Positions 15,644 to 64,000 of a stretch of DNA of 64,000 bases are shown here, piece after piece. Below the pieces are notes generated by a model, which ran no database searches, was not told the origin of the DNA, and saw only the letters and a program-made list of their open reading frames with translations. How positions within the stretch are numbered: the stretch's first letter is position 1; the number at the start of each line of letters is the position of its first letter. Origin of the DNA: Pavona decussata (Eukaryota); contig CDRNST010000020.1 in NCBI GenBank assembly GCA_977016875.1, positions 5,766,001 to 5,830,000 of the forward strand. Reading direction: 5' to 3'. Both the position numbers and the translations under genes were made by a program.

Positions 15644-16041
15644 GTCCAGAGAGTGGACTGGAAACGAGGCTGTCACGCTTTTCATCTAGGATGAAATACG
15701 AGACTTCTGCAGCTAGCTTTCATCGCTTACTCGCGAGCACGATGGTGGAAAGGATCTACGACGAACGATAGTTTTATCAAACAAGGTATTCTATATTGTT
15801 TGCCTCTTGAAACGTGAATAATATTCTTTTGTTTATAAATGTGTTGACTTCTCTCTTTGCATTTGCTGGAATGCATGGCAGGTAAGCTTACATTTAACGC
15901 TGCAAACCATCTCAACAGCGACAATTTATTAATTAACGCAAGTAAGCTTAATTCAGGATGGAAACTTTCCTTGCTTCCAGCTAATACTTTGTACCTTAAG
16001 CGAACGTCGTGATTAGAGTATCTGTTTTATTTTAATCGTAG

Positions 16042-16128
16042 GCTTTGAACAGAGGGTTGCCACGTGAAAGCTGTGAGCTTATTTTGAGTTGCTGGCGACA
16101 TTCCAGAGAAGCTGTCGTTCACTGAACG
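16042..16128 (+). other. Candidate non-coding exon (87 nt), preceded by a candidate exon ending at 15881
   Basis: Donor CAG|GTAAG at 15881/15882; acceptor tttattttaatcgtAG at 16040-41; donor ACG|GTGAGT at 16128/16129. All three frames of the exon contain stops. Confidence 0.4.
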
Positions 16129-16848
16129 GTGAGTGAAATATATCACTGCAAATATTGGGATCTTTTTTAAGTGAAAAAATGGGCCTATTTTAAGTGTACA
16201 GGCACCTTATAGTTAGGTCCCTCAGGTAAGGGGCACTTAAGCCTGTAGCTCCGATCAAACGGTCATGATGAAGATTGATGATAGTTCACCTATGCCAACT
16301 ATCATTCACTATCATTTACTATCATTGATGATAGTTTGTCGAAATCACTCAATGTGATCACGCAGATAACTGGTGGCTAGTCCCCTACCGCGTGAAATTG
16401 TAAACAAACATGGCGGCACTGAGGTCAGCACTGTGGGTGGTGCTTTGGACCTTGTGACTAAAATGGCTGTGTATCGGCTGATGAGAGCAGCTATTTTCAG
16501 AATCAATTTAAAATGTCTTAATATCCTTATACCAGAAGGTGTCAGAATTCTTGCCAACTGCTGTGTGTATACATCTATATGCATACCTGCCAACTCTCCC
16601 GGGTAGAGCATCAAATCTCCCGGGAAATACCTACCGCGCTCTTTGTGAGATATGTCTATTAATATTGTTTATTTCTCGTCAGCTTCCCCCCCCCCCCCCG
16701 CACTGAAGCCCTAAATGTAGAGTTGATGACACGGTTCTGCTGGGACAGCGGAACAAATAGGACAGATTTCTAGACGTCTCCAGATTTTTGTACTCCAGGG
16801 CTGGACAGGTATGTATATGGGTCCTGCTAAATGAAACGTAACCTCGTA

Positions 16849-17031
16849 CAGTCAACTCTCGCCTTGTGGACACCTTGCTATTATGATCACCCTGATGATA
16901 CAGACCAGAGCTAAAACCCTGGCAATAATCAAATACAGACTTTTGACTGAAATACCCATTATTACGGACTCTCGCTATAAAGGACACTAACTCACGGTCC
17001 CGAGGGTGTGTGCAATAAAGAGAGTTGACTG
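16849..17031. mobile_element. Tc1/mariner-pogo type MITE
   Basis: TA|CAGTCAACTCTC ... GAGAGTTGACTG|TA. Confidence 0.88.
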
Positions 17032-17249
17032 TACTATATTTTATCAAATTTCTGTTTTTAGTAGTCCAAGCTAACAGAGTTCTATATCTAAACTGTGAGC
17101 ACATGATTAAATCAGTGTTGGTTAAGCATCCTGTAGATTCCCTCATCTGAATTTTCAAATTTCAAAAGCTTTATTATATTACATGTTGCACTCTAAAGGG
17201 AACAGGTTTTAATATTGGCTATTTATTGTTAAATTTTTACCATTCCAGC

Positions 17250-17637
17250 CACAGCAGAGTCAGGCGAATGTCAGAGAATCTGTTATCTCTTTGGTATACT
17301 TGCCAACTGGTGGAGGGTTTTCCTGACAACAGTGATGCTTGCACCATCCTTCATTTCTTTAGCAGTGTTGACACGTCATGACCTGCTTTGCTCTAAGAAG
17401 GCTTCTAGGCAGATTTACTGTCCCTAAGGTCTGAAAGATGAGGAAGATGCTGAGACTGGAGAACTGATTCCTGGACCCTGGTGCAGCTGTGCAATGGAGA
17501 TGTCATCTCTTCCCATACCATCTACTGGCCATAACCCCAGCAGTAAGGCCAAGGCAGTGAGGGATGCTTTTACAGAATACATCTGTAATGAAGGTAGTGT
17601 ACCATGGCAGTGGGACATGTTGAATAACATGTCCTAA
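17250..17637 (+). pseudogene. Degraded Harbinger (HARBI1/ALP1-like) transposase, C-terminal part
   Basis: Translates with frameshifts and stops as RRMSENL..FGILANWWRVFL ... AKAVRDAFTEYICNEGSVPWQW. Confidence 0.8.
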
Positions 17638-61672: not shown

Positions 61673-61799
61673 ATCTCTTGTAGCGTGAACCTAATACTCG
61701 CATGAAACTGGAAGTATTTTTCCTTTGGTCCAGGACGGAACGTCACTTCCGGCATACCCCTCTAAAAAGCCAGGTTACCAATGCTTTCTTTTACGATCA

Positions 61800-62683
61800 A
61801 CTCTCCAAGAAATGGCTTCCACTTTCATTGTTTAAATTCTAAACGAGCATGACTGGACAGCTTGCCCTTAAATACAATGTTGAAGAACCAGGCCAATTCA
61901 TTCCTTTAGTTAGATTTGTGTTCTCAGCCTCGAAAGTAAACTCTGGAAAGGGAAGATTTTGTAAGGCCAAACGATTGTGTAATGCTACCAGCAACCTTTT
62001 GAAAGAAATGTGGCTACAGTCATCTTGAACACTCTCCATTGATCTGCTAAGGAAAGTAATAAATTCCACGGTCTTCTCGCTGCATTTCCCAAACCTGATG
62101 TCTTTCAGTGCAATAAGAAATTCTTCGTGTCTTTGGCAAAGGACATCTGTTAGCTTGTAGCGGTGTGTTATGGCGCTTTGGAATACTGACGAATGGAACA
62201 TAAATAACCCCTCATCTAAATCGTTTGGAACGGCACGTAATTGCAGAAACTCTCCAACAAGAATCACTTGCTTTCCAGCAAAGGGACGATTACACTGAGA
62301 TTCACTTAGGCACTGGTGTATGGCATTAACCAGTTCAAGCATAGGCTGACTTGACATGCTTGCTTCGTCCCAAATCAATACACCGCTTCTTCTTATTGAA
62401 TCGATAACCCCACTAATTTTTGTTGACCTCTCGACAAGCTGTCCCCAAGGTATGTCGGCAATTCCTACACTATAATACGAATTCACGGTCGACGCGACCC
62501 CAGGATCGTACACTCTGCGTGCTATACCAGTAAAACATACAACAGATACCCTTTTACCAACTGCATGGAGATTGTTGATTATTTCTCTACGTCAGTTCTT
62601 CCTTGGCCAGTAACAAACAAATTATGTCCTTTGGAGGCTAAGCTTACTATCTTCGCTTGTCCATGTGATAACTGAACGATCAT
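61800..62683 (-). pseudogene. PIF1-family helicase, degraded and C-terminally truncated
   Basis: HNLFVTGQGRT (broken Walker A), STVNSYYSVG, LIWDEASM, PFAGKQVILVGEFLQL, LKDIRFG, PVMLV. Confidence 0.85.
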
Positions 62684-63849
62684 ACTGACGAATAACTTAA
62701 ATCTTTCTCAAACAAACGCTAAAAGTAAGAGATCACAGTTTGCTGATTTCAAGTTACTTTGGAAGACGGAGATGGATACTGATTAATCTCAGTTGTGAAT
62801 TCTGTCAAATATTCCGAGAAATAACACATTATAACACGGGAAGGTTGAGATTATAACAAGAATTTGGTGAAAAAAAGGTGCGAAACACGAAGCTAATGAA
62901 ATAAACAACACTGCAAGCGCTCTAAAATGGACATTTACTTTGGATAACACGAGCAAGAATTGGTGAAAACATAATAAAGATTAAGGTAATAAAAACATAC
63001 AATGAGGGTAGACATAAATCAGCAAACATTTTATTCACAACGATTAGTCCTTTGTTGTGTATAACAGCTCATTTCCGGTGTTCATCCGCACTTTAAACAT
63101 CCATTTCCCTCAAGTCAACTGTGATACTTTTTTCTAATGTGGGGGATATCTCTGACCTTTGCAGCGTTTCGGAGAGGAATCACGTTCATTTTCGAGTGGT
63201 CCTTTCGCCTTTGACAACATTTTTTTGTATTTCAATGAAAACCTTGCAGAACATTGACAATATTCAAACTTTGCTGTCTGGTTTGTCTTTTGATGTCCTG
63301 TCACTTCGCCTCGCTATGCCATTGGTCGCTCGTAACAATGGAGCTGTCCAAGATGCCGCTGTGGGGATGGGGTAAGTGCTGTACATGAAATCACTGTACC
63401 CCATCGGGTGGAGTTAATTTCATCTCGAACCCAAGCTTAGTGACCATTTTCAAAATCATCAGGTCTTGGAGAAAAGACGCCATCGGGGAATCAGAAGCAG
63501 AAAATGCTCATTTTCAGCCAAGTGAGTGGGAATTTTTGACAATGACACATTCACCGAGATTTGCAAATGATGGGGCTTTAGCTTTGTGTGAAAAAATCGC
63601 GACTGGGATGGATTTTCAAGGTGTAAACTGCCTCTGAGTGGACTACGTGAGCTTACGGTCGAAATCTTAGTGTGCTGCCTTGACTCCGTCTTATGACGGA
63701 AATGACAGTGATTTTAAAGAATGCCCCAAACGGTAAAATAGCCACTAACCACACAAAAATACTCCAGAGTTGAGTCAGTTTTATTCATTTTATTGAATGC
63801 GTGTTAAATTTAGCGTTTTCTCTAGCGTTACAATCGGGTGTATATTATT

Positions 63850-63987
63850 TCCCATACAAAGTCTTATAACGCGTTTAAATTTTCAACAGCTGGCTGTCAC
63901 CCAATACCACTTGCACTCAAAGGTCATCGTCCCACTAGTTATTAATTATCACACACTCTCTAGTGACGCAAACTTGGGCTGCCTATG
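63850..63987 (-). mobile_element. Transposon terminus of a CA(C/T)AGG(C/T)AGCCCAAG family
   Basis: Reverse complement reads CATAGGCAGCCCAAG...TTGTATGGGA; related termini lie at 14005 and 20332 on the plus strand. Confidence 0.55.
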
Positions 63988-64000
63988 CTGGCACCCTCAT

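Follow-up and report, generated by a model that had tools for sequence, protein, structure and literature searches.

A strand-biased transposon island in the coral Pavona decussata as a candidate uni-strand piRNA source

A gene-free island of dead and young transposons, most of which point one way, occupies at least 148 kb of the Pavona decussata genome. Its first 48 kb, starting at ~16 kb, lie within the window, the 64,000-nucleotide stretch that we analyzed (assembly GCA_977016875.1, contig CDRNST010000020.1, positions 5,766,001 to 5,830,000 of the forward strand), and the island extends beyond it, reaching at least 164 kb. We tentatively regard the island as a candidate uni-strand piRNA source resembling Drosophila flamenco, a reading that is possible but that we hold as somewhat short of probable. 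A preliminary description of the same DNA, made from its letters alone, had proposed this interpretation, and it is partly supported by our analysis. Three features predicted of a flamenco-like locus were found: a plus-strand spliced non-coding exon at the left edge, transposons that are mostly antisense, and no detected coding host exon downstream. New relative to the preliminary description are the extension of the island to at least 164 kb with a weaker bias, a spliced RNA contig (16128-17249), and a boundary in CpG content.

Gene content and the left edge of the island

The host genes, acyl-CoA oxidase (ACOX, minus strand) and CLN3 (plus strand), are both over by 7.7 kb. Examination of open reading frames (ORFs) of at least 100 aa between 15.8 and 64 kb revealed no host-type Pfam domain, bearing out the original claim that ~45 kb here contain no host coding sequence. 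Across 15.8-164 kb, ORFs of at least 100-120 aa carry transposon-type Pfam domains only, although short exons would escape this screen. Likewise, no coding host exon was detected over 148 kb downstream of the exons at 16-17 kb by the same ORF approach, which misses small exons, and the plus-strand ORFs scanned over these 148 kb are without any host-type domain. Neither Rfam nor tRNA scanning found anything in the window, so a snoRNA host gene is not indicated. The features that define the left edge and the body of the island are as follows.

12001-16000, no strand: CpG-rich, apparently unmethylated, promoter-like zone at the left edge; CpG observed/expected (o/e) 1.1-1.6
15640-15881, plus strand: candidate upstream exons, with GT donors following their ends at 15785 and 15881; single-copy; no contig in four runs
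16042-16128, plus strand: non-coding exon with AG before and GTGAGT after; single-copy; donor confirmed by contig
16129-17248, plus strand: intron, GT..AG, with a pyrimidine tract before the AG; removed in the contig
17249-18554, plus strand: downstream exon or transcribed stretch, with contigs on 17248-17400 and 18269-18554
16130-64000, no strand: transposon island depleted in CpG, with a mean o/e of 0.54; it runs on beyond the window as far as at least 164 kb, with a mean of 0.65

An RNA contig of 236 nt (X13) joins position 16128 to position 17249 across a GT..AG intron on the plus strand. Both sides of the junction are single-copy, and the junction reflects RNA and not DNA background because the unique stretches alongside have zero depth. 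The preliminary description had placed two plus-strand non-coding exons here; the spliced contig confirms the donor of the exon at 16042-16128, whereas the candidate exons at 15.64-15.88 kb gained no contig in four runs. All exons seen, including the candidate upstream exons, contain stops. The intron contains two MITE-like repeats (16595-16820 and 16846-17035), and a further MITE (17644-18266) separates the two contigs of the downstream stretch. The last contig ends at ~18.55 kb, and there are none at 19.2-21.0 kb in the four runs, for which assembled contigs of mostly poly-A-type runs were searched. Read depth at 18.8-19.0 kb was considered as an exon and rejected, as it fits a small repeat at 18932-19057.

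Using CpG o/e as a proxy for methylation, we see an unmethylated-looking 5' end followed by a CpG-depleted body. Upstream, the ratio is 1.07 across 8-15.6 kb and 1.1-1.4 within 8-16 kb. Just behind the exons at ~16 kb it is 0.51, 0.10 and 0.19 on successive stretches, low-copy DNA included (0.10 for 17249-17640), and it stays low for ~148 kb. Low-copy DNA within the island is likewise CpG-depleted. The gene body of ACOX next door has a CpG o/e of 0.39, and transposons upstream of the host genes have values of 0.8-0.9. This profile resembles a promoter with a methylated domain of the gene-body type behind it and fits a transcript 5' end at ~16 kb, and the sharpness of the boundary adds support for a long germline-active domain. 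Furthermore, the onset of the strand bias, the CpG boundary and the inward-pointing spliced exon coincide within ~2 kb. It is important to point out that Acropora methylates intergenic transposons directly (PMC8857917), and therefore CpG depletion need not mean transcription.

Transposon content and orientation

The island is filled with diverse, nested and truncated transposons of several superfamilies, in which old pieces lie beside very young ones sharing 97-99% identity with other copies. The earlier statement that old and young insertions occur together is consequently correct. The principal elements in the window are listed below.

21311-23758, minus strand: young Helitron-like element with an OTU protease ORF (Pfam OTU); other copies 97-98% identical
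32871-33380, minus strand: remnant of a multi-copy protein family; intact family copies 725 aa
35326-40392 (35326-35680 and 39326-40392), minus strand: element X, of a family with ORFs of ~406 aa
42811-45234, minus strand: Mutator-like transposon with a 540-aa ORF; 97% identity to another copy
46712-53779 (46712-47320 and 51797-53779), minus strand: LINE A, with zf-RVT and an internal deletion at 53068; copies 99% identical
47315-51797, minus strand: LINE B, inserted in LINE A, with ORF1 and a 1098-aa EN+RT ORF2; copies 98-99% identical
53827-56339, minus strand: remnant of a two-ORF family, possibly DIRS-like; intact copies 600-684 aa
59307-62698, minus strand: Helitron-like copy with PIF1 helicase; three same-oriented sister copies downstream

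Nesting is not confined to the LINEs. The young Helitron-like element at 21311-23758 sits in an older repeat (21141-21311 and 23758-24484), the flanks of which are adjacent in other copies, and element X is interrupted by a 3.6-kb insert consisting of a minus-strand remnant (35691-36491) and an unoriented repeat (36489-39282). Several of the names first given to the pieces could not be sustained: Kolobok, hAT, Sola2 and old LINE have no Pfam support, and the Sola2-like ORF is also without a PDB match, whereas DIRS is plausible, solely through co-located ORF families. Pfam searches of 30 further window ORFs (64-139 aa) gave a single chance-level CUB match, PDB sequence searches with three remnants gave nothing meaningful, and an ESM Atlas search with the plus-strand fragment 17428-17634 gave no usable match.

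In order to count insertions, we accepted as verified those backed by Pfam, genome copies, or multi-copy protein families. All nine verified independent insertions in the window are on the minus strand and none is on the plus strand (two-sided p 0.004). ORFs of at least 150 aa number 13 on the minus strand and 1 on the plus strand, where shuffles expect 0.17 and 0.35, respectively, and lowering the threshold to 120 aa gives 20 and 4 against expectations of 1.4 and 2.3. The direction of the bias reported in the preliminary description therefore stands, but its piece counts were inflated by split elements. One of these, ten of ten pieces on the minus strand between 42.6 and 62.7 kb, was an over-count, because several pieces are parts of single elements: LINE B accounts for both the LINE ORF1 and the 1098-aa ORF2, LINE A for both the EN/RT ORF at 51.7-53.3 kb and the zf-RVT piece at 46.9 kb, and the "Sola2-like" and PIF1 pieces share one Helitron-like copy at 59.3-62.7 kb. 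Counting merged blocks of neighboring same-strand ORFs was dropped as a test, as merging forces the strands of the blocks to alternate and thus yields ~1:1 in every case. Taken alone, the strong bias of one 48-kb window proves little, because ~49 equally biased windows of this size are expected by chance in the 602-Mb genome.

The next 100 kb (64-164 kb), which had not been seen when the bias was first noticed, contain ~19 minus-strand and 7 plus-strand elements (one-sided p 0.014), or 12 and 5 if only verified elements are considered (one-sided p 0.07). The bias is weaker than in the window, at ~70-75% minus. ORFs of at least 150 aa on 112-164 kb are all on the minus strand (12 minus, 0 plus). 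Combining the two intervals (15.8-164 kb) gives ~28 minus versus 7 plus, an antisense share of ~78-80%. Sister copies of the Helitron-like element at 59.3-62.7 kb are found in the same orientation at 68.5-69.8, 77.4-78.3 and 79.6-82.1 kb, and these four copies within 23 kb may be local duplicates. There are 251 poly-A signal hexamers on the plus strand against 268 on the minus strand, with no plus-strand depletion. The TG/CA, T/A and G/C skews are at most weakly positive and do not settle the matter, and neither GC nor AT skew holds steady along the island.

A candidate piRNA source and its alternatives

If the island is a piRNA source, Pol II would produce a long plus-strand transcript across it, and antisense piRNAs would be processed from that transcript. 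The locus would work as a one-strand trap for transposons in the manner of flamenco, with further guides supplied by recent insertions such as the LINEs with 98-99% identical copies. Pointing toward this reading are the orientation of elements in the window and the extension, the spliced RNA, the CpG boundary, and the nesting of old and young insertions, together with the piRNA clusters of Nematostella, most of which are unistranded (PMC5731801), and those of corals, with their 5'-U reads (PMC13343488). Points against it are that RNA contigs stop at ~18.55 kb, that the bias of the extension is ~70-75%, that the four Helitron-like copies may be local duplicates, that poly-A hexamers are not depleted and the TG/CA and T/A skews are weak, and that ~49 windows of equal bias are expected by chance, together with the transposon-poor content reported for published coral clusters (PMC13343488) and the possibility of methylation without transcription (PMC8857917).

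Several of these points also favor an ordinary methylated transposon island, in which the bias results from chance, local duplication and window selection, and the spliced RNA is a short unrelated transcript from the CpG-rich zone. The number of windows expected by chance, the finish of RNA contigs by ~18.6 kb, the undepleted plus-strand hexamers and transposon methylation that can occur without transcription (PMC8857917) are all compatible with it, as are the split elements that inflated the first count, the four same-oriented Helitron-like copies within 23 kb and the verified-only extension (12 versus 5). However, the direction of the bias is kept over 100 kb of unseen DNA, including the one-sided ORFs of 112-164 kb, the start of the bias lies within ~2 kb of both the CpG boundary and the inward spliced exon, and CpG depletion extends to low-copy DNA inside. 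We consider an ordinary island somewhat unlikely. Alternatively, the island could belong to a long host transcription unit without a piRNA role, either a long non-coding RNA or a protein-coding gene with a giant first intron and its coding exons past 164 kb. Sense transposons, which carry splice and poly-A signals, would be purged from such a unit, and gene-body methylation would deplete CpG. An antisense bias of intronic transposons is established, and the plus-strand spliced non-coding exon, the CpG boundary and the antisense bias fit a host unit equally well; indeed, antisense transposons in long host introns share with this locus the antisense excess relative to a plus transcript, the gene-body-like CpG depletion and the unmethylated-looking 5' end. 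The present locus differs in that no coding exon was detected in 148 kb, where plus-strand ORFs are without a host-type domain (small exons escape the ORF screen), and in that the exons seen contain stops. For a coral, a gene or intron longer than 148 kb would be extreme. Preferential methylation of intronic transposons in cnidarians is consistent with a host unit (PMC8857917), which we nevertheless judge to be unlikely.

It is also conceivable, if highly improbable, that orientation was set at insertion, for example by replication-fork direction, and not by selection within a transcript. Some elements, LINE-1 and those of HUH type among them, favor one of the two template strands at replication forks. 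A scale of 100-150 kb would suit a replicon arm, but the bias is seen across elements with unrelated mechanisms (LINEs, Helitron-like, Mutator, two-ORF possibly DIRS-like, and Gypsy-like), and the GC and AT skews are not steady across the island.

Relationship to known piRNA loci

Read as a candidate piRNA source, the island has clear parallels with Drosophila flamenco: both exceed 100 kb, are gene-free, and consist of mostly antisense transposons from many families, nested and truncated, with a discrete 5' edge beside a host gene and a spliced RNA at that edge (a Pol II transcript starting there in flamenco, and putatively so in the coral). In contrast to the Gypsy-type retroviruses of flamenco, the coral locus contains DNA transposons, LINEs and Helitron-like elements. 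Its antisense share is ~78-80%, and it is known from DNA features and one spliced contig, with piRNA output as a candidate property. In the anthozoan Nematostella, one-strand sources are the norm, as 402 of the 457 piRNA clusters are unistranded, and piRNAs mainly slice transposon RNAs (PMC5731801). Those clusters were defined from small-RNA reads, unlike the coral locus, and in the portion of that study drawn on here a flamenco-like antisense trap architecture is not described for them (PMC5731801). Reef corals have 47-107 piRNA clusters called by proTRAC, in which 5'-U reads exceed 90% and a ping-pong signal is seen; these are reported to overlap both genes and intergenic DNA and to have a transposon density below expectation (PMC13343488), whereas the present locus is nearly all transposon. 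Possibly, published coral clusters were called transposon-poor because repeat-rich loci are poorly assembled.

If the island does make piRNAs, a coral locus would unite the capture of transposons, the transcription of a one-strand precursor and methylation of the gene-body type, and flamenco-like trap loci would prove not to be peculiar to insects. A broader proposal, which we regard as rather doubtful, is that the genome carries many one-strand transposon traps of 100-200 kb, each with an unmethylated edge promoter, a methylated body and a flamenco-like master piRNA role. If true, this would be the first such architecture outside bilaterians, and antisense trap loci would predate the cnidarian-bilaterian split. 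If the island is not a piRNA source, coral genomes still hold strand-coherent, methylated-looking transposon islands with a sharp promoter-like boundary that need explanation. The long-read assembly makes the piRNA question directly testable by existing small-RNA protocols.

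Transposon content and strand bias of the island

We analysed the window (C20:5,766,001-5,830,000 of a 602-Mb coral assembly) together with 50 kb of upstream and 100 kb of downstream sequence (positions past 64 kb continue the window numbering). The preliminary description had found no host coding sequence in the transposon-filled island that begins near 16 kb, and this holds, as scanned ORFs of at least 100 aa over 15.8-64 kb contain no host-type Pfam domain.

Pfam domains in the window
21.4-22.7 kb, minus strand, OTU
43.5-45.1 kb, minus strand, Mutator
46.9-47.3 kb, minus strand, zf-RVT
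47.6-50.9 kb, minus strand, endonuclease and reverse transcriptase
51.7-53.3 kb, minus strand, shortened endonuclease/reverse transcriptase ORF
61.8-62.5 kb, minus strand, PIF1

Three minus-strand ORFs without a Pfam match are members of multi-copy protein families that are intact at other sites (copies of 725, ~406 and 600-684 aa), and are therefore transposon remnants. Matches to other genome copies place one minus-strand insertion, LINE B (47315-51797), within another, LINE A (46712-47320 and 51797-53779), each 98-99% identical to other copies, and a Helitron-like element with OTU (21311-23758) within an older repeat. Another minus-strand insertion, element X (35326-35680 and 39326-40392), is interrupted by a 3.6-kb insert, and 59.3-62.7 kb (59307-62698) is a single Helitron-like copy. 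Given this nesting and the single Helitron-like copy, the ten minus-strand transposon pieces previously counted between 42.6 and 62.7 kb represent about six events.

LINE A has an internal deletion at ~53068, where other copies contain ~1.7 kb more; a 546-aa minus-strand frame (51704-53341) stays open across it, fusing the endonuclease's first ~90 residues with the reverse transcriptase end. Sister copies of the 59.3-62.7 kb element lie in the same orientation at 68.5-69.8, 77.4-78.3 and 79.6-82.1 kb, giving four copies or fragments of one family, 88-92% identical, in 23 kb, one of which contains a nested Mutator piece. Either local duplication or repeated insertion could account for them.

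Long minus-strand ORFs are far above chance frequency in the window: 13 of at least 150 aa against 0.17 expected (plus strand, 1 against 0.35), and 20 of at least 120 aa against 1.4 (plus strand, 4 against 2.3). All nine verified insertions are likewise on the minus strand (two-sided p 0.004), bearing out the bias originally described. Nevertheless, about 49 equally biased windows are expected by chance in a 602-Mb genome, and the window alone therefore proves little. The downstream extension served as an out-of-sample check. The island reaches at least 164 kb, and only transposon domains are found in this extension.

Domains and elements in the extension, to 164 kb
Minus strand: YqaJ, PIF1, Mutator, DDE_Tnp_4, RT-RNase H
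Minus strand: SAP, HIRAN, HTH, tyrosine recombinase
Plus strand: Harbinger, two LINE pieces, a weak recombinase piece, a Zator-like element

Verified elements at 64-164 kb number 12 minus and 5 plus, or about 19 and 7 when unverified ORFs of at least 150 aa are included (one-sided p 0.014). Clusters of ORFs of this length are 13 minus and 8 plus at 64-112 kb, 12 minus and 0 plus at 112-164 kb, and 3 minus and 4 plus in the 50 kb upstream. The bias is regional, ~78-80% overall, and the window's appearance overstates its strength.

Spliced RNA and CpG depletion at the left edge

Assembled contigs from four RNA runs were aligned to 15600-21599. One run, X13, shares its species label with the DNA, and a 236-nt contig from it matches ~16040-16118, then four letters, then 17248-17400. 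Compared with the sequence, this is exon 16042-16128, with a 5-nt indel, spliced to 17249 on the plus strand (GTGAGT...CCAG). Both sides of the junction are single-copy in the genome, so the spliced RNA stems from this locus. Run X13 also has a second contig, in a low-copy stretch at 18269-18554. Of the spliced non-coding exons proposed earlier, the donor of 16042-16128 and the stops, present in all frames read, are upheld; 15600-15999 has no contig in the four runs. Zero contig depth over the unique stretches 15.6-16.0 and 19.2-21.0 kb argues against DNA carry-over, and also means that no transcript is seen deeper in the island. Depth at 18.8-19.0 kb is accounted for by a small repeat.

About 30 bases past the contig-covered 17248-17400 is a single-copy, stop-bounded open frame of 69 aa (17428-17634, plus strand), which resembles the C-terminus of a protein that has decayed; the ESM Atlas returned no family for it. 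Contig depth is very high in each of the four runs over MITE-like repeats at 16846-17035 and 17644-18266, whose terminal inverted repeats start CAGTCAACTCTC; the family is thus a common one among transcripts.

CpG observed/expected ratios
8-15.6 kb: 1.07
15640-16130: 1.11
Intron 16130-17248: 0.51
17249-17640: 0.10
18270-21140, mostly low-copy: 0.19
16-64 kb, mean: 0.54
64-164 kb, mean: ~0.65
Young LINEs: 0.66-0.81
Old pieces: mostly 0.28-0.57; element X, 0.90
Intergenic DNA upstream (hAT- and Crypton-type remnants): 0.8-0.9

Judged from base composition, these values match an unmethylated 5' end with a putatively germline-methylated body behind it, and the boundary between the two lies within ~2 kb of both the spliced exon and the start of the strand bias. 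Plus-strand depletion of poly-A signal hexamers was not found, mutational skews across the locus are weak, and Rfam and tRNA scans are empty; none of these adds support.

Candidate readings of the island

The preliminary description proposed a uni-strand piRNA cluster like Drosophila flamenco, a trap for antisense transposons; its observation is partly confirmed and its interpretation partly supported. The regional bias, spliced RNA and CpG boundary are consistent with a candidate one-strand piRNA source, a reading we hold tentatively. It is somewhat unlikely that the island is simply methylated, its strand bias arising from chance or inflated by duplication, as the clustered Helitron-like copies might suggest. 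CpG loss need not mean transcription, because intergenic transposons in Acropora carry methylation in their own right (PMC8857917). The out-of-sample counts, which likewise lean to the minus strand, speak against a chance bias. A long host transcription unit without a piRNA role could likewise include the spliced exon, whose frames contain stops, and is a little less probable again. An orientation bias fixed at insertion is very improbable.

If the island is a piRNA source, it would add a coral one-strand cluster to an already known kind of locus: 402 of 457 clusters are unistranded in Nematostella (PMC5731801), and three reef corals have 47-107 clusters, with >90% 5'-U reads (PMC13343488). 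The reef-coral clusters are described as transposon-poor (PMC13343488). What would be new is a trap architecture like that of flamenco.

Host genes and repeats beside the island

Host genes occupy the left end of the window.

Host genes
257-847, minus strand, N-terminal exon of acyl-CoA oxidase (other exons upstream)
3.9-7.7 kb, plus strand, CLN3

The acyl-CoA oxidase gene body (window 1-847 and 10 kb upstream) is strongly CpG-depleted (0.21-0.5; body value 0.39), whereas adjoining CLN3 is not (0.94); the methylation histories of these neighbours are opposite. An unbroken, apparently single-exon multicopper oxidase ORF of 884 aa with all three Cu-oxidase domains lies on the plus strand, ~27-29 kb upstream of the window. 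Between CLN3 and the island, the CpG-rich zone contains a tandem repeat (10982-11271; two 147-bp units, 87% match). Immediately before the candidate first exon is an inverted-repeat element (14850-15640) whose termini carry many TTCGCCCGA-like motifs and whose inner part is copied at 2886-3148 with 96% identity.
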